Assembly: GCF_033153115.1 (NCBI RefSeq)
Contig: NW_026889803.1
Span: forward strand, 55,862,001 to 55,926,000
Direction: 5' to 3'
Length of the DNA stretch: 64,000 nt
DNA from: Saccostrea echinata
Taxonomy: Eukaryota
A model generated the notes under the pieces. It worked only from the letters and a program-made list of their open reading frames with translations, made no database searches and was not told the origin of the DNA. Positions 13,988 to 53,300 of this stretch are shown one piece after another. Within the stretch, counting starts at the first letter, position 1, and each line of letters starts with the position of its first letter. The translations under genes were made by a program, and so were the position numbers.

Positions 13988-14340
13988 CTTTGTTGTGTGT
14001 CAACGTGGTTAGACGGAATCCTGTAACCACGTGATGCAAAGAGAAATACATCATTGGCGTAAGAATTCTATAAATAATTATGGACGGAAACCCCCTTTCT
14101 AACAGTACCGAGGCTTTTATAATCGATATTGTCATTGGATACATTAAAGCGTCCCATAAAATGATATCCAATCAAAAGCTTCAAATCAGACCGTTTAGGT
14201 TTCAAAGCATGTGTTGACATTCTTGAGATCACATGCAGGGAGAGTGCTGACAACAAACTAAAAATGCACTTATAGCATAAATATATTGATTTATGTTTTA
14301 ATTATCATGAGTTTGTGGAATACAATTAAACAAAGGTACA
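13988..14340. promoter_or_regulatory. Putative bidirectional promoter between GMDS and the SAM-SAM-protease gene
   Basis: Divergent ATGs with 353 bp between them. YY1-like AAGATGGCG over the GMDS start, E-box CACGTG at 14028-14033, kB-like GGGGGTTTCC (-) at 14086-14095. Confidence 0.6.
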
Positions 14341-17300
14341 ATGACAGAACGGGTGCAGACGCTTCCAATACGAAAATTTTTAGAGAATATGGGACTAGTG
14401 CAATACTTGGACATGTTTTTGATAAGAGGCTATGACAGAGAAACTGACATTACTTCTCTAGATGAGAATGATTTAGACACAATGTTGATCTCGGATCCTG
14501 ATCACAGGCACCAAATATTACAGGCTGGTAAGTATACTTCCGGTCATGATTCGTGGTAAGACTTAGAAAATCTCAAAAATTGACAAATTACGTTAATTAA
14601 CTGATAAATTACATTATATAAATTCTTTAATCTCCCATGATAATTAGATAACAGATTATCTTCGCTAGCCATGGGTTTTCGGGGGTATGCCAGATCTTTA
14701 GAGGGGGGGGGGGGCGTGCCCCCCCCCCCCCCCTCGGCCAATAATTTTGTAAACATACACAAATCAGAAAACAAATCTAATTTACGGATGTGTCCCTCAA
14801 TAATAACGCCCGATTTTTGTTCTAGATTTGCTTGTCAAGAATTTTTAATTTAGGATCAATACTAACCCCCCCCCCCCCCCGCCCAATTGAATTTGCTTCC
14901 TAAGGGCATGCACGGGAACAGACTCTAGAGTGGTCCGAAAACCCTGGCTAGTGAAGCTGAAGATGATGACAACTATTTTTTTTTATACATGTATGCTTGT
15001 ACATGCGCAGTACAATGTGACACGACATGAACTAGCTGACAGTATCGAAAGTTATTATATGATCTAGCCTTTAATTGAATTTACAAACAAGAAATTAGAA
15101 TTAACCTACATGTATTCAAGTTCCACAGTTCAAGAAATAATGCGGCGAAAATATCATTGATGACTTCTACTACAATTCCTGGAGGCGGTTGTCTAGACGA
15201 AAACTTAACTGAATAACTGAATCAGTATATGTCATAAACTTCTCATAAGACAAATTTTCATTGTGTATTTATGTAAAGATTGCACTAATTTATTATTAGA
15301 TTTGAATCGGTTGAGATGTAGCCTTGTAATAACGGTGTGTGTATAGTACCTGTCACGCACCTGTCCTTTCATGTTTCACATTAATTTTGCATCCCTCCGC
15401 AGGGAAAGCGATAATCGAAGTGAAATGAAAATAGTGTATCGATTTCAGAATCTGTGGCAACGGTGGGAAACTGATAAATGAAAGCATTTAAAGGTGATAT
15501 TTTAACAGGCAATTACAGAGTATTGCTGCAGTTTGCTGTAGTATTGATCTACTGTATTCGCAAAGACTTAAACCGCAACGATGAACAGATTTATCAACAA
15601 TATGAGTACGTCTAGCGAAGTTTTGACAAACTCATTTGCACCACATCCCTAAAGCAAGCAAAGAGTGAAATGTTTAAGTTAGGTTGTATCTGCCGTGTCA
15701 TTTGTAATTGTCCGCTGGGCCTGGCAGAGAATAATTTTTTCCCATATAAAATTTAGATTTTTTAAGGTTCTAAAAACTGCAATTTTTTAAATAATGCGGT
15801 CAAGAATTGAACAAAATTTGCATAAACAATGTAGAAATTCGATTACCCTTGTTACCCCCCCCCCCCCCCCAATTTTCCCGCGTTTTTAAGTCACTATGTC
15901 TTTCTATAAGAAGATCAAATATTTAATCAGTGTACTAACTTTATATACTGGTACAGATTCCTTTTATGTTGTATATTCCCAAACGGCAATTAGTTTAAGA
16001 AAGTTGGACATTCTGTGCGTATCTGTACATTTTAAGTAGGCCAGTATACCTTTAAACATAGTTCTAAATTTCAAATGTTTCTGTAGTTCTTGAATTTGCA
16101 CGAAATTTGAATTCGAGTTTAAAAAAAAAAGATATATTCATATTACATTTTTTGAATTTTCAATCATGAAACCCAATTCGAATCTATATGTCTTCTTGAC
16201 ATTAACTACAATTAATTATAGCATTGCCTAACTCTCTATTTTCAGCGGCCCAGTATCGGTCTCCTGGAAGTTTTCGAGTTCTTGAATGGTTACAGCGTAA
16301 TGGTTTGGAACATTATTACGTCGGTTTCATACAGAGTGAAATTACGTCAATGAACGATGTAAAAAATATGAAAGTAGATGAGAATCTGTTTGATGAACTT
16401 GAAATAACACTTCCTGGACACAAAAAGAGACTGAAAAGAGCAGGTAGATAGGAAGATACTTCACAACACAATGTATCTCAGCCATATTTATTATAGAATG
16501 TAAAAGAGCAGGTAGATAGGAAGATACTTCACAACACAATGTATCTCAGCCATATTGAATTTAGAATGTAAAGCAAATACGTTGTATCATACTCCAATTT
16601 AATTAAATAGAGGATTCTTTTTAAAATAAAACAGTTAACAGAAAACATGATTTTTGCACCCAGTCTCCAATGTAAGACCTTTTTTTCTTTCTTTTTATGG
16701 AAAGGCCGGAGGGGGGGGGGATTACTTTTCGTATCATACATGTAACAACCTCTGTGGCATTGATCCAAAATCAACGATTCGTTGTTTGGTTGACAGTTAA
16801 TTCTGTTTCCCTATAAGAGCATTTCCTTATGATTCTGTAAATCCAATTAATTAATTGATAACCGTACTGTATAAGTCATACCAGTAGAGTTTTAATATTT
16901 TACCTGATATCAATATCCCCTCGAGTCTGCCGCCAGTCATACTTTGACTGCAACTGATGCTGGATCGATTTCATCCTGGTATTTTAGTTCTTTGATTTAG
17001 AAATTGAATAGTTCAATACCAGGCTAAAAAAGACAGGTGCGCTATGGTTAGTGGAGTAACCGAAGACTCATTACTAAATAATTCCATTGTAATATATCGA
17101 CATTGGAAACTTTAAGCTAAATCAGTTTACATTTAACCGATTTTGGTGAAAAAATTAACGAAGTAGATTGTAACGGAACTTGAAGATTTTGGGATGGGAG
17201 CACATTATTTTACATGTGTATACGCAATTGAAATTTAAATGTTCTTATATGAGGGACTTTGAAATAAAGAGCTGCTATATTTTCAGTGCATATATTCCTA

Positions 17301-18638
17301 TAATTTTCAACGTATTTAAAACAATCATGTATCAAACACTTCGACTGTTATGGTCAAACTTTTTTTTTGCCAGTGACCCAGTTACAGAAGGAGCAGGTAG
17401 GAGACTGTCCCACGGAGGATGTGTTAGCATGTGGTCGGTGGAAAAAACCGGCAACACTCAGCGACGCCAAGTTTGATTTTCTTGTAGTTGATGCCAGTAT
17501 TTACTCAACTAAGGAATCCTCAAAATACCGTAGAATAGGTAAGGTGTGATCAGTATATGTTAGGGGAGGGATTATTGTATATAAGAACGTTGATTGTATA
17601 ACTCAAGGACTCTGAAATGAAAGGGATTTGTGTCAATAATTTACCTACGTGGTTTTTGTGGATGGGGAGGGGGTGTTTTTCTCACCCAAAACAGACTCAT
17701 GTCAGCGAGAGGTCAACTGAATTAATAATTCAGTCAACATTTTGTCAGATTTTTTTGCGTGAATTCTTGCTGTAGAAAAAGTGCTCACATTACCCTTTTG
17801 CAATGTCAATCAAACTAAAAATAGATGTTCCGAATCCGTTACAGGATGATTGTGTAATTTTGATTTGAATGACGCACTATTTGTTGTTGTTTCTTTTTTC
17901 AATGTAACCCATTTTACACTTGTTCTTTTTCAGAGTTCATGGTGGACACGGGCAGTGACGTGACCACGATTCGACAAGAAGTTTTAGATGAACTAGACCT
18001 AGAAATTCTGGGGCGAATACACAGTAAAGGTGTTCACGGTTCCAAAACCACGACCCTGTACAAGGCGAAAATACTCATAGGAAATCAGGAGATGGAAATA
18101 GAGGTACAGGGAAGACACAAAATAAAAGACGTTTTGTGCATATATTGGACAATTATCATAATGATATCTAAGCTAAATTTTAATACAGCGCAATATAAGA
18201 ATCAAAATACTTCAAGGTACACGTACTACGTAAAATAACAAAATAACTACAATTTCTTCACAGGTCATGGGAGAGAGTTACGATTCATTAGGAAGTCGTG
18301 TTGTACGGCATTTTCGTCATTACGTTGACGGCAAGCATCACGTGTGGCTTCGCGGGAATTTCTGTGACGAAGACAGTAAACTGTGTCAAACGGCTAAATA
18401 CCAGGCCCTGAATAACGATACCTCTCATCAGTCAGATATTTCTGAATCCTTCAACAGTGCAATAGCTTCCCAACCCAGAAGTCCTAAAGTCCAAGACAAC
18501 CAAACAACAGACAGTGCTATACATTGCAATTCTACCTCAAAAAAGCGGAAGAGAACGTCAACAGAGGAAGACGGTGTTCCGTCCAAAATGTCTTCCACGA
18601 CATATCTCCATGTATCGCCTGATGAATTAGACCTGTGA
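14341..18638 (+). CDS. Uncharacterised protein: SAM + SAM + retropepsin-like (clan AA) aspartic protease + low-complexity tail with KKRKR, 364 aa
   Basis: Exons 14341-14527, 16246-16443, 17374-17538, 17934-18103 and 18264-18638, all GT-AG, intron phases 1,1,1,0, 1095 nt open. SAM motifs FLENMGLVQY...ISDPDHRHQILQAA and EWLQRNGLEHY...ITLPGHKKRL. Protease motifs IEFMVDTGSDVTTI and DSLGSRVV. Confidence 0.88.
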
Positions 18639-31100: not shown

Positions 31101-31395
31101 CAGGTGTTCAAAATTCTGGTAAAAATACCCTTGCATATTAAAACTTTTACTCTGTTTGCCTTGAACATCCCCAGAAGCATAGAAGATTTTCAAAGAAATG
31201 CATTTTCACCATATTATTAAATAAATAAAGCCCCATCCTTACACCAGAACATCTGACCCATTGGCCACAAACTCACAATTCTGGAAGAAGCACCCTTTCT
31301 CATTATAACTATACATTTGTTTCTTTACTTTATAACCAGTAGTAGAAAAAATATTTTGAAAGAAATTATGCATTTTCACTATATAATCAATAGAG

Positions 31396-31438
<43 letters not shown>

Positions 31439-32287
31439 CCCCCCCCCTTCACCAGAACCCCTGACCAAGGGGCCATGAATTTTACAATTTTGGAAGAGGC
31501 ATTCTTCTTTATCATAACCATGCACTTCCTTTGTTTGAAAAATACCCAGGAGCAGAGAAGAAGATTTTGAAAGAATTCATGCCTTTTCCCTATATAATCA
31601 ATAGAGCCCAGCCCTAACACCAGGACCCCTGACCCAAGGGCCATGAAATTCACAATTTCTAAAAAGGCAGCCATGCTCACCATAACTATGTTCTCAGTTA
31701 GTTTATTTAATACCCAGGAGCAGAGAAAAAGATTTTCAAAGAATTCATGCATTTTCACTATATAATCAATAGAGCCCCACACTAACACCAGAACCCCTGA
31801 CCCTGGGGACATGAAATTCACAATTTTGGAAGAGGCACTCTTGCTCATCATAACTATGTAATTAGTTACTTTATTTAATACCCAGGAGCAGAGAAGAAGA
31901 TTTTCAAAGAAATATGCACTTTCACTATATGATCTATATAGCCCCACCCTAGCACCAGAACCCCTGACCCTGGGGCCATGAATTTCACAATTTTGGTAGA
32001 GGGCTCAATGCTTATTAAAATGATGCCAACAGTTTGACTGCTTGATGTCCAGGAGTAAAGAAGAAGATTTTTAAAGATTGCATTAATTTTGGTGGTTTTA
32101 CCCCCACCCCTCAGGCCCCAGGGGGGCAGGGACCATGAAATTCACAATTTTTGTTCCCCTTCACCCATAGATGCTATATGCCAAATTTGGTTGAAATTGG
32201 TTTAGTGGTTTCAGAGAAGAAGCTAAAAATGTTCAAATGTTAACATACGACGCACGACGCACACTGCACGCCGACGGACGAGAACGG

Positions 32288-41901: not shown

Positions 41902-44900
41902 ATGTCGTATATCGTTGATGGAACTGATTCGGACCTCAATAGGCCACAAACATTTACATTTGAAAGGCACGCCAGTAAACTTCTATGTGCTTTGAACAGC
42001 ATCAGAAAGAAGAGACATTTCTGTGATGGATGTGTATTCATCGATGGAAAAGAAATACCTGTTCAAAAGGGAATTTTGGCAGCAGCTAGTCATTACTTCA
42101 GGCAAGAGACTTTCTTTGCAAATGCATGTTATTAGAATATTCATTTTTCTTAAAATGACAATCCAATCAAGCTAATGTAAGGAATTTGTTCAATTTACGT
42201 CCCTTGCCAAGTGACAAAATAAGAGGGTGGGAGACCTAAATAATGGAAATGGAAAAAGAAAAGAAAGAATGACTTTCACCTTTTGAGCTTGAATTAAATC
42301 GACTTTCTTTAGTTGATTCTTCACTTAAGTTGACTTTCTGACTTCAAAATCAACAGAGGAAGTTATTATATAAAATTTCATACCAAAAGCTAAAAAAAAA
42401 ATACAGTAACTTAAGTTATTGTCCGGAAACAATTTTATGCAATGTATGAATTTCTGACCTTGACCTTTTGATCTCAAAATGAATAGGAGTCTTCAAGTCG
42501 TAGGAAGTTATAATATAATATTTCATTGCAAAAACCCAGAGAACTTATGTTTTTCTAATCTATATTATAATTTATCACTTTTAAGTTTTCATATTTAAAA
42601 AAAAAAATGAAATTCTACCAGATGTCATATAACCATAAGTCTTCCTCTTTTTAGATTGGTATTTGATAAAGCTAATGATTGCAGCAGCTATATTGGTGCA
42701 CTGCCTGATTCTACAATGTCTGTGGCAGGTCTTAATTCTGGAGTTGTGGATTTGTCTCCTTTACAGATCACAGCAGACACATTTGAAATAATCTTGGATT
42801 ATTTGTATACATCAGAAATTGTTTTGGATGAGGAAAATATACAGAACATTCTCCAGGCTGCTGACCTTCTTTTATTAACAGATTTGAAACAGGCATGTTG
42901 TGAATATCTTCTGAAATGCATAACACCACAAAATTGTCTAGGAATCTGGGATTTTGCCTCAAGATTCAACTGTTCTTGGGTCCATTTAAAAGCTACACAG
43001 TTTCTTGAGAACAACTTCAGGTCAGTGAAACATTGCTATTGTGAAATCTTTTGAAAATGCCAGTATTTTCATCCACAGGTGGATACTTCTCTACTTGTAA
43101 AGCTTTCTTGTGTGTATATATATATATATATATCATTATGCGAAAACNNNNNNNNNNNNNNNNNNNNNNNNNNNNNNNNNNNNNNNNNNNNNNNNNNNNN
43201 NNNNNNNNNNNNNNNNNNNNNNNNNNNNNNNNNNNNNNNNNNNNNNNNNNNNNNNNNNNNNNNNNNNNNNNNNNNNNNNNNNNNNNNNNNNNNNNNNNNN
43301 NNNNNNNNNNNNNNNGGATTGTGAACATCATAAATCAGATGCATTTGTGCTCTTTGTTTATTTCAAATGAAGGATAGACAAAGATAAATCCACTATGAAG
43401 AGTCAAGATGAACTTTTGCTATCCCCCAAATGTTCATGTCAGTGTCCTGGTCAAAGTCTAAGAAGCAAGTCTGTTGTCAAGCAACTATAAGACTACCTTG
43501 ACTAATATTGCAATGATGATGTATCTAGGGATATATACTATACTACCAGTCATGCTTTGAATTTTGCATCTGACTTATTTTCCTGGATGATTGAACAGGT
43601 TGAAGTGTATGGATTAGGTCCAGCATAGATACTGTATACTTAACTTGAACCAAATTTGCATGGATTATGCATCAAGGATCTGACATTCTTTGGATGATGT
43701 ATCCTGCATGGATGATACATCTAGTGATGCACAATACTAGGCTTGCTTTGGATGATGCACCTTACTGACATTTTCTGCTGAGTGACCTGGTTAAAGGTTT
43801 TGAGCAGGTCCATTCCAAAGATATGGTAATTAATCCCTATCTTATTTGCCGAGACTTAATTATCTTTACTTAGGTAACTTTCATTGAGGTGAGTTTAGTG
43901 ATTTTTCAGCATCTATATTTTGGTTTTTGCCATTGAATTATATATATTTTTAGAAATATTATCAACTATGGAGAGTTTCTACAACTTCCCCATGACATGC
44001 TGACCACCCTTTTGTCTACTGACACACTCCAGGTCAGGACTGAGGGGGACATCCTAAACAGCATTATACGATGGATGAAACATGATGAGGAGAACAGGAA
44101 AGGGCACCTGTCAGATCTGATTAATAAATGTCTCAGGGTTCAGCTCCTCAGTGAAGACGCTATCCAAAGGTTAACAGAGATATATCCAGATATACACAAC
44201 CTTGGGATTCACAAAATGATTCAGGACAAATTACAAAGTCAGAATGGGCATACAGACCAACCAAGGGGGATAATCAATGTGCTTGTGTGTGCTGGAGGAG
44301 ATTCCAGAGTTATCCAGTAATTATGTGAAGTGATATCCTTTATTGAAAATTTCCAAAAATTAAAACATTTAGCAAAATAACATATAAATTAAATTTATGT
44401 TGTAGCAATTATGAGAAAGAGAGTGGAGTGAGGAGGGATGTTTACTGTTTTTCTGCCACACCCACTGGTAACAAATGGCTAGAGTTACCTCCCATGATGC
44501 AGAGTCGAAGTGCTCACAGTGTAGTTGAAGCAGGTACTCAAAACATGTAATATAGCACCAAGTCCTACAGGTTCTGTAATTCATTATCTCTTCTAGATAG
44601 TATTATTCATCTTTAGATTGAATTAAATATTTACTTTAAAAGGAAAATGTTCAGACCAGAGAAATTGTAATCTAAATGCACATGTAAATAGGATTGTTTA
44701 TCAATCACCATTTTAGGAAAAATTTGATTACTCAAAAGAAACAAATAAAGCACTTGTACATGTATCTTTGTACATGTATTTTTATTAGCGTGAAAACTTT
44801 CAAATACAGTCAAACCTTGTTATCTCAAACTCGATGGGACCGAGAAAAAACTTCAAGATATCCAAGGATTCAAGATATCAGGGGTAAAATACTTAGAGAA

Positions 44901-45888
44901 TAAGTGGTTGGAACTTCCAAATTACTTAGACATACCCATGGTATTCAAGATATCAGAGTTGGAGATATCAAAGTTCAACTGTATGTAATTAATGGGGTAA
45001 TTATTGATCAATTAGATGTTCATCTTCACAAAGATGTTTGTTACATTGCACTTTATATTTGTAGGAGGGTGTCTATATGCTATTGGGGGTAAGGATATAG
45101 AGGACAGAATACTGGCCACAGGTGAAAAGTTTGACCCCAAGGTCAACCAGTGGACTCAAATTAGTCTGATGAACCATGCAAGGTTTGGATTTGGTCTGGT
45201 TGCCGTTGAAGATAATATTTATGCTATTGGAGGCAGTAATGATATTAGAGAACCCACCACTTCTATGGAAGCATACAACATTTTTAGCCATAAATGGACA
45301 CCTTTACCAGAAATGAACCTGAGAAGGGTGTGGTCGGCCTATGCAGTAGTGGGCAAGAAGATCTATGTTATAGCTGGGGGAATGATTGGGAAGTTGTACG
45401 AGTCAGTAGAATGTTTTGATACTTGTACTATGACCTGGTCATCTGTCTGTCCAATGAGGGAGAGGAGATGTGATGCTAGGGCTGTAGCTTGTAGGGAGAA
45501 TATTTTTGTGTTTGGGGGTGTTAGGAGGTATGAATGTCCAAGTGCAATGCATGGAGGAAACAACATCAAGTTCTGTGGGACAGAAATTTACAACACCTGT
45601 CAAGACAGCTGGCAGCAGGTTCCCAGACAACAGGAGTTTCTATGCACAATGAATGACTCCTCCCAAATATTTTCTGTGGTGAAAAACGGAGATGAGATCT
45701 GGGTCATTGGGGACCTAGAAATGGGTGGAAGGTTTGAATGCATCAGAGCTTTTAATGTCTGTAGCAGGATATGGAGAACTGTTTCTGTGAGTGGTCCACC
45801 AAACCTACGTGGATACCCATGCTGTATGTTACACATACCTAAACAAGTCTTAAGAAAATTACCTAATTCTAAACCTCCAGTTCAGTGA
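41902..45888 (+). CDS. GAN: Gigaxonin (BTB-BACK-Kelch CUL3 adaptor, KLHL16), 626 aa
   Basis: Exons 41902-42101, 42655-43020, 43954-44316, 44406-44533 and 45065-45888 (1881 nt, open; first intron GC-AG). Gigaxonin-like strings DGKEIPVQKGILAAAS, QAADLLLLTDLK, GKLYESVECFD, CPMRERR and WVIGDL. Confidence 0.9.
43148..43315. other. Assembly gap (N run) in GAN intron 2
   Basis: 168 Ns. The ORFs called across it are artefacts. Confidence 0.99.
44807..44981. mobile_element. Tc1/mariner(pogo)-type MITE
   Basis: TA|CAGTCAAACCTTGTTATCTC...GAGATATCAAAGTTCAACTG|TA. Confidence 0.82.
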
Positions 45889-47569: not shown

Positions 47570-48901
47570 TTATTCCTTTGTCCCTGTTGGGAAGTCTTTA
47601 TCCATGTGTTTCAGCATTTCTGTGAGATAAGTTTGTACAGTAGCCAGTGACGCCACAATAGCAGGAGACCCAAATCCGTGACAAATCATACTGAAACGGG
47701 TCAGAGGATTCTGGATTTCTGGGTCCAAAATATTCTGGGGTCTGGAGTTCCCAATAGGGGAACGATCTTGATTCAAAATGTCCATGAATTCTTTTAAAAT
47801 CTGTTTTGAGGCAATGATCATGTTTTTTCTTGCCATCTGTTCTTCAGGAATGTTGCTATGATACTTTTGAACATTATACTTGGCACATTGTCTTGACGGA
47901 AATTCGGTTTCACATAAATATCCAAAATCACGAGCTAGGCGAATGGCTTCCCCCTCCACTACAGATGTCAGAAGTGTCACCGGTGCTGACTTTCTTCTCC
48001 CTGCTGGTAGAGCCAAGCCAATCTTATCCAGCTTCTCTCGTAGGTTCTTGCCACCATCTTTGGACTTTGCCCTTCTGAGAACACCTCCCAGAAGTGATGC
48101 ATTGAGACACTCTGGTGCTGATAACCTTCTTTGGATCTCTGCGACTGTGACTTTGTATTTTGAGGTACTGCTAAGTAGAGAAAGACGTCCATCCACGAGA
48201 CAGAAAACATCAGCTGGACCAGTTGAACTAGACAGAGGCATGTCATGTGATCTAGATTCCTTGTGAGGTAAAAGTGCTCTCTGAAACTCCATCTGGTTGG
48301 AGATTTCCCTTGGAACATAACTTGTATCCTGAACTGGAGAATCATTGCTATTTGGAGAACCACTATAAGAAGACTCGGACGTGTGCAGATTATCTGGTTG
48401 CTGATTTGGCTCACTATACATGACGGGAAGATTTTCTATGTCATCTCTCAGGTAGGTACTAGGTTCTGGCTTGAACTCTTGGATTCCATTCAAGCTGTGT
48501 GAAGGATAATCGGTCTGCTGTGATTGGTAGAAGTTTATTGGAGGGTATTGTTCTCCATTATACTGAGAATGCTGGCTCGGGTATCTCTCCATTCCTGGAG
48601 GTTGTGAAATAAGGAATGGAGGTGGAAAGAACGGATACTCCACCCCCTGGCTGGTGGGGGGATATTGGGGCGGGAATCCACTGTGAGACTGGATACTGGC
48701 AGATGAATACACACCTTCGTGTGACTGACTGGAAGTTGGGTACAGCCCCCCTGAGAATGACTGGCAGGTCTGTGGGTACATCCTTGACTGTGATGTCAAT
48801 GCAGTATTACTCATTGATGTTAGATGTCCATTATGGGTTGAAGGATTATCAGAACATCCATTATAAAGTCCACTTTCACCAGCCTCCATTGCACTTTTCA
48901 T
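47570..48901 (-). CDS. TFAP2: Transcription factor AP-2 family protein, single coding exon, 443 aa
   Basis: Uninterrupted ORF with a P/Q/S/Y-rich N-terminus, then the AP-2 basic and helix-span-helix region ([50 protein letters not shown]...[20 protein letters not shown]...HGFGSPA). The paralogue subtype cannot be assigned. Confidence 0.95.
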
Positions 48902-50369: not shown

Positions 50370-53300
50370 CTATAGAAGTTTCGGAATGGTGTTCATTTTT
50401 CTCTTCATCTCCTCGGATTGATCATCATCTTCATCATGTTCCCGGAATCCTTCGCTAGCCTGAGTCTTCCCCAGTAACTCCAGCATAGCCTTGGATTCTG
50501 GATCACTTTGTAAGATGCTCTTCTTTGTTCCCTTGAGAATAAAAAGTTTTAAAATGTAAATATTAGGGGTAAATTTCTAGTTTTCCATGTTAATGATGAT
50601 GATAAGCAACTTTACAACTTTTATAAATATCACGTTCACCGAGGTAAGTTATTGCCCCATAACCTCCTCCAAAACAGCAACTATTGTACTCACAGTCTGC
50701 TCCCCTTCATCATCACTATCCTCGTTCTTCTTCTCTGGACCCAGGGCCCAGACTTCAATAACGTCCACCTCAAACTCGGGGTCAGCTGATAGCTGAGGAC
50801 TGCCGTACGTCGTACACTTAGGTTTGGCTTTACTGTGGCCATGATTAAAGCTGCTGTCTATCCACAAACCAAAATAGTCCATCTGTCCCCCCATACCCTT
50901 TATAAAGGAAAGTCAAAGAAGAATAGAAATGAAATGAACATTTGAAATACATATACTTAAACAGCATCAAACAAAATGGCTATATTAGCACCAGCTTTTT
51001 GTCAGGTATATGATTAAAAGATTAGTAGAAATCTTCAGCAAAAATCTTTTAAGCAAGTATAAAAGTAGAGAGTTGATTTTTTTCTACTCTGTGAAATATT
51101 ATACCAGTCCATTAAGAAGTGTGGCCTGTCCTTGGTTGAGGTACATGAAGTTTTCATTGTACATGGTTGGTGTGTAGATCCCATACTGTGGACTCAGAGT
51201 AAAAAGAAAACATGATGAAGAACCTACAGAAATAATAATATATTGGGATATGATTATACATTACTATATCTGTAAAACTGTTGTCAAATTTTCATCAGTT
51301 TTGACTAGCTAGTGAACTTTTTCTTATATGTACATGTAAATATGCAGGATTTAGCAGTCTTGGTCTGTAAAACAACGTTTGAAATAAGAATGCCTAAAAG
51401 CATGCCATTTGTAATGTGAACAAATTCATTAACTGGTTCAGTTTCAATTTTGGATAACCTTGACCCTGCCTGTCCAAATGATGTTTGGTCAGTATCATGA
51501 TAAGTACATGTACATACCCCATGATCATTAGCTTCCTTTTTCACTGAGTAGGAACTTCTAAAGTTTTTCCATTACAAAATTATGGGTTGTACAAGAATTT
51601 CAAACTTCTAATCTCTGTGACCCTGACCTTTATTTATAACACTCTCTGACCTTTATTTATAACACTCTCTTTTGATGACAAATCTGCCACAATAATGACA
51701 TGTTTCCATTGTGCTGAGCTTTCACTGAATGTTTTTCCATATCATAGTTTGTTCACAATGACCTTGGTTCAAGGTTATCAAATACCCACCAGCCAAAAAG
51801 TTACCATCTGAAATCTCAGTGTTCTTTTTTGTAAGATCAAAGTAAATCGAGGTAGTTATTTGGTATTTATAAGTGAGACAATATTTTCAGAATTCTCGTT
51901 TTTGCTGCATGTAGTCTTTCATAAGAAGTTATACAGAAGAATAAAATTTTATGAGCAGAGGGTCTCTTGAAATTATGCTAAATAAAGTTCTGGTGAATAA
52001 AAAGTGATTTACAGTAGACAATAGACAAACAGAAAGAAGGCAAACTGGAAACAATACGACTCGTGATCTTCAATCTTGAGGCATAAATACAGCATTGGAT
52101 ACTGTACACAGGGAAATTTTAGCTGTCGTTTTATTTTTGCCACTTTCATCCTACTCACAGGTGGGTGAATTTAAAATGGGGCTAATTCAATGAACACAGT
52201 AGAATTTCTTAAACAGAACTGTGACTGAGCAAATTTAAAATGGGGCAAAATTGTTTGCAAGCGTAAAGGGTGAAAATAACCCTGTATACAGTATATAGAT
52301 AGATGCACACGAAAATGAGGTTTGCCCCCTACTATAAAAGTCTTACCATAAAATTTAGCCCTACACTCCCAGCTGTCAGCAGCCATTCCTCCAAACAGGT
52401 GTCCCTTCTTGTCCCTGATCACAAGTAGGGTGGGACCTTTATTTATAATTTGTGACAAAAGCTGAGAGAAGCTGTCTCCAAAAACAGAGTTGCTGAACAG
52501 GAACCGCCAATGTGACTGGTGCATGATGGGAAGGTTATAGTTCAAAAACAACACAGAATTGTGGTCGAGAACACTCCGGACTGCCTCATTACGATGACCC
52601 ACAAATACTGGGATTGGTACCATTGCTGAGATATTCTCCAATATCTCTTTTTTCTAAAATTTTGATTATTGTTTCAAAATTTGACTAATTTATAGAAAAG
52701 CTTAGTAGCAAAAAAGACAAATCTGAATTTCTTACATTCTCGAACTGGAACAAAATACTGCACACAGTATCAAAGATGTTCATAAAATGTGGTGTTTTGG
52801 ACATCCAGGTTTCTATGTCACTGATACACATATTCCAATTCTCACCACTGGCTGTAAGAAATATTCAAACATGTAATGAAATTTTATGGTAAGATAAACA
52901 TCAAATCATGAAAAAGCCCATGCAGGGCATCCTTACAGAGTTCATGTGTATTTGAAAATGCGTACAATTACAGTCAAACCTCGTTATCTCAAACTCGATG
53001 GAATCACAAAAAACCTCGAGATATCCAAGGATTCGAGATATCGAGGGTAGAATACTTAAAGAATAAGTGGTTGGGACTTCCAAATCACTTCGATATCCAT
53101 GGTATTCGAGACATCAGCGTTCGAGATACTGAAGCTCAAGTGTATTTAATCACAAAATTTTTACACTGTAAATTTCTGTGATATTTAGATAACCTTGATT
53201 CATGGTGATGACATCCTCTGATCATAAAAAAATGTTTACCAAAATGTAACAGAATGACCTTTGAACATTCCTCTGTTACTAAACTAGACATTAAGTTTAT

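Follow-up and report, generated by a model that had tools for sequence, protein, structure and literature searches.

Tandem SAM domains joined to a retropepsin-like domain in an oyster host gene: an unnamed animal family with a predicted dimeric active site

Does a run of short open reading frames (ORFs) in an oyster genome encode a host protein in which tandem SAM domains are fused to a retropepsin-like aspartic protease, and if so, what might the two parts do for each other? The question is raised by a locus on the plus strand of a 64,000-nucleotide stretch of Saccostrea echinata DNA (RefSeq assembly GCF_033153115.1, contig NW_026889803.1, positions 55,862,001 to 55,926,000; hereafter the window, from whose first letter all coordinates are counted), for which a first-pass annotation had proposed such a gene and a protease switched on by oligomerisation. 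The reading that we favour, and in which we are, as a whole, fairly confident, is that a single-copy, intron-containing host gene gives rise to a 364-aa protein in which a tandem SAM (residues 1-133) is followed by a short linker of basic character, by a protease domain of 130 residues (143-272) and by a disordered tail that evolves fast. Its working form would be a symmetric protease homodimer, in which Asp188 and Asp188' at the two-fold axis make up one active site, as they do in HIV protease, DDI1 and APRc. The tandem SAM would be the protein-protein interface by which the place and local concentration of dimer formation are set, or by which a partner is brought in.

The five exons, read from the sequence and with their junctions recomputed (coordinates in the table), sum to 1095 nt, that is 364 codons and a TGA stop, within a gene span of 4.3 kb, and are separated by introns of 1718, 930, 395 and 160 nt. 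In order, the donors read CTG/GTAAGT, CAG/GTAGAT, TAG/GTAAGG and GAG/GTACAG (the stroke marks the exon end), all four acceptors are a pyrimidine tract followed by CAG, the junction phases are 1, 1, 1 and 0 with the split codons GCG (Ala), GTG (Val) and GAG (Glu), and an in-frame stop (14308-14310) lies directly 5' of the exon 1 ATG. The first-pass annotation had joined five ORF fragments through GT-AG sites into one 364-residue frame, and the RefSeq protein XP_061163137.1 (P0134; 'uncharacterized protein LOC133172293 isoform X1', 364 aa) is identical to this five-exon product residue for residue. Isoform X2 of the same locus (XP_061163138.1, P0071) contains exons 1, 3, 4 and 5 as exact substrings and lacks exon 2; since both RefSeq proteins contain the exact exon translations, the same junctions were used by an independent annotation. 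The motifs by which the parts had been recognised, ISDPDHRHQILQA, ITLPGHKKRL, IEFMVDTGSDVTTI, DSLGSRVV and KKRKR, were all found in the sequence, and the proposed order of SAM1, SAM2, linker, single protease half-domain and tail was borne out by Pfam searches exon by exon and by the structural model described below. That this is a real gene, with a product running from SAM1 through SAM2, a linker and a retropepsin-type domain to a tail, is in our estimation close to certain. Analyses of the whole protein were run on database proteins, namely P0134, which is the RefSeq copy of the oyster product, P0071, and P0003, the orthologue from Ostrea edulis.

The locus has the marks of a host gene. In the genome of 923 Mb, exon 4 and exon 5 are each found at a single place, spliceosomal introns lie inside the protease domain itself, and the neighbours at the locus are ordinary host genes of the BTB-BACK-Kelch, TF AP-2 and TLDc types. 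The first-pass annotation had called it a spliced host gene rather than a retroelement, a view with which the single copy, the introns within the protease, the orthologues and the gene tree presented below all agree. Its further statement that no gag, reverse transcriptase (RT), integrase or long terminal repeats (LTRs) belong to the gene holds for intact RT and integrase ORFs, none of which adjoins the gene, as ORFs of at least 110 aa are absent from the flanking sequence for about 12 kb in both directions; the search did not extend to gag, LTRs or decayed copies.

By their sequence profiles, the two SAM domains can be regarded as certain, with exon 1 matching SAM_2 (E 5e-9) and SAM_1 (E 2.9e-8) and exon 2 matching SAM_1 (E 6e-10), both passing thresholds. 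For the protease region, exon 4 matched gag-asp_proteas at E 8.5e-5 and 23.5 bits (cut-off 28.2) and Asp_protease_2 at E 1.5e-4 and 22.9 bits (cut-off 24.3), and in the 364-aa protein the scores were 22.2 bits for Asp_protease_2 (PF13650) and 23.6 bits for gag-asp_proteas (PF13975), both again under these gathering cut-offs. The Pfam picture that had been anticipated, two SAM domains plus a domain of the Asp_protease_2 or gag-asp_proteas type, was thus obtained in full for the SAMs, and for the protease in the form of matches to the expected models below their cut-offs. Among 44 members of the family introduced below, Asp_protease_2 was matched independently by 33 and gag-asp_proteas by 19 at E<=0.01. 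The RVP and spumavirus protease models reached only E ~0.1-0.2, exon 3 gave no Pfam match, and exon 5 gave only a DUF5703 match (E 0.16) that is not credible. In the ESM Atlas, the clusters nearest to exon 4 were bacterial and archaeal Asp_protease_2, and the whole protein gave no usable match. Judged by sequence, the oyster domain is a divergent relative, and not a recognised member, of Asp_protease_2/gag-asp_proteas.

Structure prediction gives this region a clear identity. An AlphaFold2 model was built for P0003, which is 95% identical to the oyster protein in the protease region, with a 44-sequence alignment; it has a mean predicted local distance difference test score (pLDDT) of 78, with values above 90 across most of the stretch from residue 10 to residue 275; from residue 281 on, the tail is disordered, with a pLDDT below 50 over most of 281-363. 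Strands were modelled at 145-152, 164-172 and 180-187 in exon 3 (pLDDT >90) and at 257-261 and 265-270 in exon 5, so that the two exons for which Pfam is silent or not credible contribute strands to the same domain. With the C-terminal domain as query, Foldseek returned Rickettsia APRc, the XMRV, HIV-1, FIV, RSV, HTLV and foamy-virus proteases and pepsin lobes, with probability 1.00 and target TM scores of 0.5-0.68. Residues 143-272, compared with 48,161 PDB representatives by VIA-align, gave Z 8.2-10.5 against APRc, EIAV, HIV, FIV, RSV, XMRV, foamy virus and Ddi1, the highest being APRc (5c9b) at Z 10.5 (111 residues aligned, root-mean-square deviation (rmsd) 3.0), followed by EIAV at 10.2, HIV and FIV at 9.7 each, a Bacteroides endopeptidase and RSV at 9.6 each, and Ddi1 at 8.9. 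On this model, the retropepsin fold of residues 143-272 is solid. Pfam and the ESM Atlas lean towards a domain of prokaryotic type, but the Z-scores of prokaryotic and retroviral proteases tie, so that no closest subfamily can be decided upon. Each chain has a single DTG, at 188-190, with an invariant Gly (G250) in the downstream hydrophobic-Gly motif, and both elements, which the first-pass annotation had read as intact, are present and conserved across the family.

Two copies of P0003 residues 140-280 gave a predicted complex score of 0.76, compared to 0.01 for the best of three controls, and the prediction runs agreed in at least 77% of contacts, with a partner pLDDT of at least 81. In the calibration of this score, 21 of 30 proteins solved as pairs of one chain came up to the mark, compared to none of 23 solved as single chains. 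The predicted interface is symmetric, with the least error at the contacts 188-188', 189-189' and 190-190', corresponding to the fireman's grip, and between 259-261 and 259'-261'; strand 254-263 (least error 258-263) pairs with itself across the predicted two-fold axis, and further contributions come from W151 and from residues 160-165 in the N-terminal extension. The predicted dimer is that of a classical retropepsin, with Asp188 facing Asp188', and the model lends support to the DTG-DTG active site that had been expected, although a predicted pair does not establish self-binding in the cell.

All conservation figures refer to a 44-sequence alignment of family members, in which the protease core is the best-conserved part, with a mean pairwise identity of 58% and 20 of 108 columns invariant, followed by the N-terminal extension of the protease domain (56%, 4 of 21), SAM2 (52%, 6 of 62), SAM1 (44%, 0 of 55), the linker (23%, 0 of 9) and the tail (18%, 0 of 92). 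D[ST]GSDV is kept in all 44 sequences, from protostomes and deuterostomes alike, and the loss of the catalytic Asp in orthologues, which had been named in advance as speaking against the proposal, was not seen in any of them. Invariant columns in exon 3 are G149, W151, P154, L157, F164, L165 and A169, and those in exon 5 are S248 and G250 (the latter in the LGSR of the hydrophobic-Gly motif), F257, H259, H266, W268 and L269. Compared with Saccostrea echinata, identity in the protease region is 96% for S. cucullata, 95% for Ostrea and 91% for Magallana, and over the whole protein 90%, 85% and 77%, respectively. At the protein level, this pattern of conservation is of the kind expected from strong purifying selection centred on the catalytic domain. 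As a separate observation, histidines 218, 259 and 266 (P0003/P0134 numbering; exons 4 and 5) are invariant in 44/44 sequences and H259 touches H259' on the predicted two-fold axis; that this might be a pH- or metal-sensitive dimer contact is pure speculation on a modelled interface.

How widely is this architecture shared? When exon 4 was compared exhaustively with 1.84 billion representatives by phmmer, 69 matches were obtained; in full-length ones the matched region lies at about residues 170-260, and SAM_1/SAM_2 lay upstream in all ten that were scanned with Pfam. The search across invertebrates for which the first-pass annotation had called thus found the architecture in molluscs, a brachiopod, nemerteans, echinoderms, a hemichordate and amphioxus. 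The members comprise bivalves (oysters, pearl oyster, scallops, mussels, clams and Solemya), gastropods (Lottia, Patella, Haliotis, Aplysia, Biomphalaria and others), Octopus and one chiton among further molluscs, the brachiopod Lingula and the nemerteans Lineus and Tubulanus among other protostomes, and, among deuterostomes, crinoids, sea urchins, the hemichordate Saccoglossus and three Branchiostoma species, with the same SAM-SAM-protease order and spacing in six phyla. When the protease region alone (residues 143-275) was used as query, the matches were all SAM-bearing proteins or fragments, and this protease subtype seems, from such sequence searches, to be always linked to the SAM tandem. 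No vertebrate, arthropod, nematode, cnidarian or fungal member turned up in these searches, an absence that is no proof of loss. The next-best matches to the family profile are true vertebrate ANKS1A proteins, which match through the SAM tandem alone (72 bits, compared to 340-570 for full-length members, at 30% identity and 38% coverage). One Octopus bimaculoides protein (P0123, 854 aa, 'probable E3 ubiquitin-protein ligase bre1') has SAM domains at 11-64 and 544-599 and the protease domain at 611-668, which has to be explained by a merged gene model or else by a long insertion that separates the two SAMs.

In a quick maximum-likelihood search, 45 members branched in keeping with the species tree, with a deuterostome clade (support 98) and a mollusc clade (97), with Saccostrea, Ostrea, Magallana and Pinctada nested as expected, and with long branches in some taxa. 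Because the gene tree follows the species tree, it indicates vertical descent, as far as such sequence data go, and not the behaviour of a mobile element. The family is an unnamed orthologous one that already existed when protostomes and deuterostomes diverged, if not earlier. Its members are called 'uncharacterized', 'hypothetical', 'SAM domain-containing', 'ANKS1A-like' or, wrongly, 'ANP32E-like', and the precomputed Pfam annotation of every family match lists SAM families only, or nothing; the public sequences carry labels such as 'uncharacterized' and 'SAM domain-containing' because the protease domain falls just under the Pfam thresholds. Two proteins of Strongylocentrotus purpuratus (P0113 and P0153) are named 'acidic leucine-rich nuclear phosphoprotein 32 family member E(-like)', which looks like a misnomer, apparently due to their D/E-rich tail (40-45% D/E). 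Literature searches for the SAM-retropepsin architecture, the Pfam names and the locus names found no publication, and neither there nor among the database names did we find a characterised protein of this architecture, in agreement with the first-pass annotation.

Short contigs from relatives contain complete coding sequences. A Magallana cluster of 131 sequences holds complete coding sequences of 365-368 aa on Logan contigs of 1.4-1.8 kb, one 365-aa form being present on 19 of them, and complete coding sequences were also found for a sea urchin (363 aa, contigs up to 2.9 kb) and for a cluster that groups with Octopus (499 aa, contigs of 1.8-2.6 kb). As the oyster gene spans 4.3 kb, Logan contigs of 1.3-2.9 kb look like transcripts if the genes of the relatives carry introns in the same way, and they are most simply explained as transcript assemblies, provided that those genes are similarly interrupted.

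The SAM tandem, in turn, resembles in sequence several SAM proteins of known structure. Among the matches listed, the solved structures nearest to the family profile were ANKS1A SAM1 (5zry, 9.8e-17), the ANKS1B/AIDA-1 tandem (2kiv, 2.1e-15) and 3sen (3.2e-13), with the CASKIN1/2 tandems at about 1e-13, further matches to 5zrx, SHIP2, SAMSN1 and SASH, and weak ones to SARM1 (0.0025-0.06). Single SAM domains superpose well (SAMD5, 5zrz_B, at Z 11.5 and 31% identity; EphA1 at Z 9.8), whereas the modelled SAM1-SAM2 pair fails to superpose on the CASKIN2, SARM1 and SHIP2-EphA2 pairs (rmsd 9-13 A over about 120-130 residues, with SARM1 at 13 A). Exon 2 comprises all of SAM2 and is in phase 1 at both ends, so that skipping it keeps the frame, the split codon becoming GTG. 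Such a skip of 66-67 aa is annotated in S. echinata (P0071/P0134), S. cucullata (P0072/P0135) and the chiton Liolophura sinensis (P0014/P0121), and the RefSeq annotation thus suggests conserved one-SAM and two-SAM isoforms in molluscs. If these isoforms are real, the exon boundaries and the cassette behaviour are old within molluscs and cells make both a one-SAM and a two-SAM protease; skipping of the SAM2 cassette would alter SAM-dependent behaviour.

What, then, would the SAM tandem do for the protease? One tentative answer, which we regard as a genuine possibility, is that of a constitutive protease dimer as in DDI1, which the tandem would dock on a SAM-bearing substrate or its neighbour, such as an Eph-type receptor or a scaffold. 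In line with this, ANKS1A SAM1, SHIP2 and SAMD5, which are among the top solved SAM relatives in the matches listed, form heterotypic complexes with the SAM domains of Eph receptors, and the protease homodimer is predicted without help from the SAMs. On the other hand, the likeness to Eph-binding SAMs is one of general SAM similarity, at 22-31% identity.

The proposal from which we set out supposes that weakly dimerising protease halves meet, and become active, only once the tandem SAM has assembled with itself into a polymer or ring, by a logic that resembles the activation of retroviral protease by Gag, or that of induced-proximity caspases and SARM1. We give it nearly the same weight as docking, so that it, too, is less likely than not. 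It gains from the conservation of the SAM tandem together with the protease in every full-length member, from the profile matches to the self-assembling CASKIN1/2 tandems and, weakly, to SARM1, from the close succession of the SAM1 helix 53-65 and the SAM2 helix 70-80, which are four residues apart in the AlphaFold2 model, and from the annotated SAM2-skipping isoform of three molluscs, which would be a natural way to tune assembly. Tandem SAMs are known as closed intramolecular pairs or monomers (ANKS1B), fibrils (CASKIN1), branched oligomers (CASKIN2) and rings (SARM1) (PMC10252437). The initial statement that tandem SAMs such as those of SARM1 and CASKIN self-assemble agrees with these cases, but, given the range from closed monomers to fibrils and rings, polymerisation of the oyster tandem should not be assumed. 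The best sequence matches listed are ANKS1A and ANKS1B, of which the latter forms the closed pair (PMC10252437), and the modelled tandem does not superpose on those of CASKIN2 or SARM1. In addition, the protease domain alone is predicted with high confidence to dimerise, so that the model does not require proximity driven by SAMs. Heterotypic docking is an equally good reading of the tandem as SAM self-assembly. Our most far-reaching suggestion, an ancient bilaterian signalling protease that is switched on by SAM-SAM assembly, be it self-polymerisation or receptor clustering, and tuned by SAM2 splicing, has to be treated as conjectural and, at present, doubtful. If true, it would provide an aspartic protease controlled by induced proximity, comparable within the cell to a retroviral protease activated by Gag, in a host clan AA family that was apparently lost in vertebrates and missed by domain databases.

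A more sceptical explanation would be a non-catalytic one, in which the retropepsin fold serves to dimerise or to bind peptides and the protein is a SAM scaffold. NRIP2/3 are host retropepsin-like proteins that are not known to show proteolysis, and a constraint on the dimer interface could explain part of the conservation, as the predicted interface residues F257 and H259 are invariant. We nevertheless consider such a pseudo-protease improbable, since the catalytic Asp, the Ser/Thr and Gly of the fireman's grip and the Ser-Asp that follows are kept in 44/44 sequences of protostomes and deuterostomes, a constancy of D[ST]GSDV that is expected of retained chemistry and goes beyond the needs of fold or interface. 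We hold it likely, with somewhat less assurance than for the reading as a whole, that the family comprises catalytically active dimeric proteases. A further possibility, that a retrotransposon has decayed and that chance or mis-annotation has attached its remains, as the protease exons, to an adjacent SAM gene, for which the name of the Pfam family with the best E-value, gag-asp_proteas, could be cited, is scarcely conceivable and was rejected in view of the single copy of these exons, the lack of a flanking ORF of 110 aa or more within about 12 kb, the identical architecture, order and spacing across six phyla, the agreement of gene tree and species tree, the presence of both SAM and protease parts on intronless contigs of relatives and the introns that split the protease domain itself.

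As to where such a protease might act, no signal peptide or membrane segment is evident from the model, in which the chain opens directly with the SAM1 helices, and we think of a cytosolic or nuclear aspartic protease that would act as a homodimer. The stretch of basic residues that follows SAM2 (GHKKRL...LRKRRK in the consensus) and KRKR clusters in mollusc tails hint, as sequence motifs, at nuclear import; clusters of the KRKR type are present in many molluscs and not in all family members. SPDELDL and KKRKR are common to oysters (SPDELDM in Pinctada), and gastropod tails carry a DDDIDHMD-like acidic motif instead. The S/T-rich tail with KKRKR described in the first-pass annotation is thus correct for the oyster sequence and lineage-specific otherwise, and the tail KKRKR and SPDELDL, being confined to oysters or some molluscs, were rejected as family features.

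Several points weigh against the reading of a dimeric host protease. The protease assignment rests on sub-threshold matches, motifs and predicted structure: all 11 members with listed scores fall below both Pfam cut-offs (best 23.3 bits, Asp_protease_2), the others being known only at E<=0.01; phmmer with exon 4 against PDB found nothing at E<=10, and the family profile against PDB matched SAM structures only, among the matches listed. The dimer score, in turn, may echo the model's memory of solved retropepsin dimers, and among eukaryotic pairs without an older solved relative only 1 of 7 reached the mark. Proteolysis by DDI1 was hard to demonstrate for years. Finally, transcript support consists of RefSeq models and of short, presumably intronless contigs of relatives.

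The features of the gene and of the remainder of the window are collected in the table. Besides the neighbouring host genes, the window contains a minus-strand ORF of three similar units that is probably a tandem DNA repeat beside a microsatellite and not a gene.

Table. Exons of the SAM-protease gene and other features of the window
Feature	Position	Strand	Basis
Exon 1: ATG and SAM domain 1, residues 1-62 and first base of codon 63	14341..14527	+	Pfam SAM_2/SAM_1; exact match to residues 1-62 of P0071 and P0134
Exon 2: SAM domain 2, residues 64-128, phase 1 at both ends, annotated cassette	16246..16443	+	Pfam SAM_1; in X1, absent from X2
Exon 3: short linker, then N-terminal protease strands, residues 130-183; domain start near 17415 (residue 143)	17374..17538	+	Invariant columns, AlphaFold2 strands
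Exon 4: catalytic half of retropepsin-like domain and flap hairpin, residues 185-240; Asp188-Thr189-Gly190 codons 17945-17953	17934..18103	+	Pfam, ESM Atlas, motif
Exon 5, first part: C-terminal third of protease domain, residues 241-272, with LGSR (G250) and FRHY strand on predicted dimer axis	18264..18359	+	Invariant residues, AlphaFold2 strands
Exon 5, second part: disordered S/T-rich tail, KKRKR 18540-18554, C-terminal SPDELDL 18615-18635, TGA 18636-18638	18360..18638	+	Low pLDDT
186-aa ORF, three copies of a ~60-aa unit, (RE)n end	31387-31947	-	No Pfam match
Exons of BTB-BACK-Kelch (KLHL-type) gene	42656-43054 and 45016-45888	+	BTB 1.6e-12, Kelch_1 8e-32
Single-exon ORF, 443 aa, transcription factor AP-2 homologue	47570-48901	-	TF_AP-2 2e-72
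ORF with TLDc domain, probably exon of OXR1/NCOA7/TLDC-type gene	52171-52641	-	TLDc 3.7e-15

To our knowledge, few host retropepsin-type protease families exist in animals, namely DDI1/2, ASPRV1, NRIP2/3 and a few domesticated retroelement genes, and a match of the oyster gene to an already characterised family, named at the outset as an outcome that would count against the proposal, was not found when it was compared with DDI1, ANKS1/CASKIN and LTR elements. NRIP2 and NRIP3 are host retropepsin-like single-domain clan AA proteins, and ASPRV1 is restricted to mammals, while the SAM-protease family was found only outside vertebrates. ASPRV1 (SASPase), NRIP2 and NRIP3 also differ in being without SAM domains, and they were absent from our sequence and structure search results. 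ASPRV1, the subject of PMC11402058 and PMC7408472, is likewise a host or domesticated single-domain clan AA protein.

On the side of the SAM domains, ANKS1A/ANKS1B (Odin/AIDA-1) and CASKIN1/2 provide the best sequence matches listed for residues 1-136, and several members have been automatically named 'ANKS1A-like'. However, Pfam scans of family members gave SAM and protease-type matches only, with no ankyrin repeats, PTB, SH3 or CASK-interaction domain, and the modelled orientation of SAM1 to SAM2 is not superposable on the solved tandems; membership in ANKS1/CASKIN was rejected for the lack of ANK, PTB and SH3. The likeness to SARM1 amounts to the weak profile match of the SAM tandem together with a poor superposition.

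On the side of the protease, the viral enzymes of HIV-1, EIAV, FIV, RSV and XMRV have the same fold and position of the catalytic motif (Z 9.2-10.2), and the predicted dimer of the oyster family shares with them the fireman's-grip contacts and a C-terminal strand at the two-fold axis. Unlike the protease of an LTR retrotransposon or retrovirus, the oyster gene lies outside a gag-pol context, is single copy, has introns within the domain and is inherited vertically. Crowding driven by Gag activates the viral protease, which is the nearest precedent for the proximity idea. Rickettsia APRc (5c9b/5c9f) is the top structural match to residues 143-272 (Foldseek TM 0.60), and Asp_protease_2 is the Pfam model that most family members match; APRc differs in that identity is only 16-17%, with a Z-score within about one unit of the retroviral proteases, and in being a membrane-anchored bacterial protein without SAM domains. 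In the AlphaFold2 model, a helix (198-204) comes after the catalytic loop, as it does in DDI1 and APRc and not in HIV protease.

A further close analogy is provided by DDI1/DDI2, which are likewise host proteins with one D[ST]G domain of the retropepsin fold, a homodimeric active site (predicted in the oyster) and flanking interaction modules, and the protease domain of Toxoplasma Ddi1 superposes on that of the oyster family at Z 8.9 over 101 residues. In DDI1/DDI2, the interaction modules that flank the protease domain bring in substrates. Nevertheless, UBL, HDD, UBA and PF09668 were unmatched at E<=10 in four family members, which carry the tandem SAM instead, and the SAM-protease family has a different and narrower range, with no vertebrate, arthropod or fungal member found; DDI1 membership was rejected for the lack of UBL, HDD and PF09668. 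The questions raised concern the substrate that such a protein would have in invertebrates and basal chordates, and the reason for its apparent absence from vertebrates. Next to DDI1/2, ASPRV1 and NRIP2/3, the SAM-retropepsin proteins, conserved from oysters to amphioxus, are an undescribed host clan AA family that adds a domain partner not reported before, the tandem SAM, and they provide a tractable test of how an oligomerisation or adaptor module might gate an aspartic protease that depends on dimerisation.

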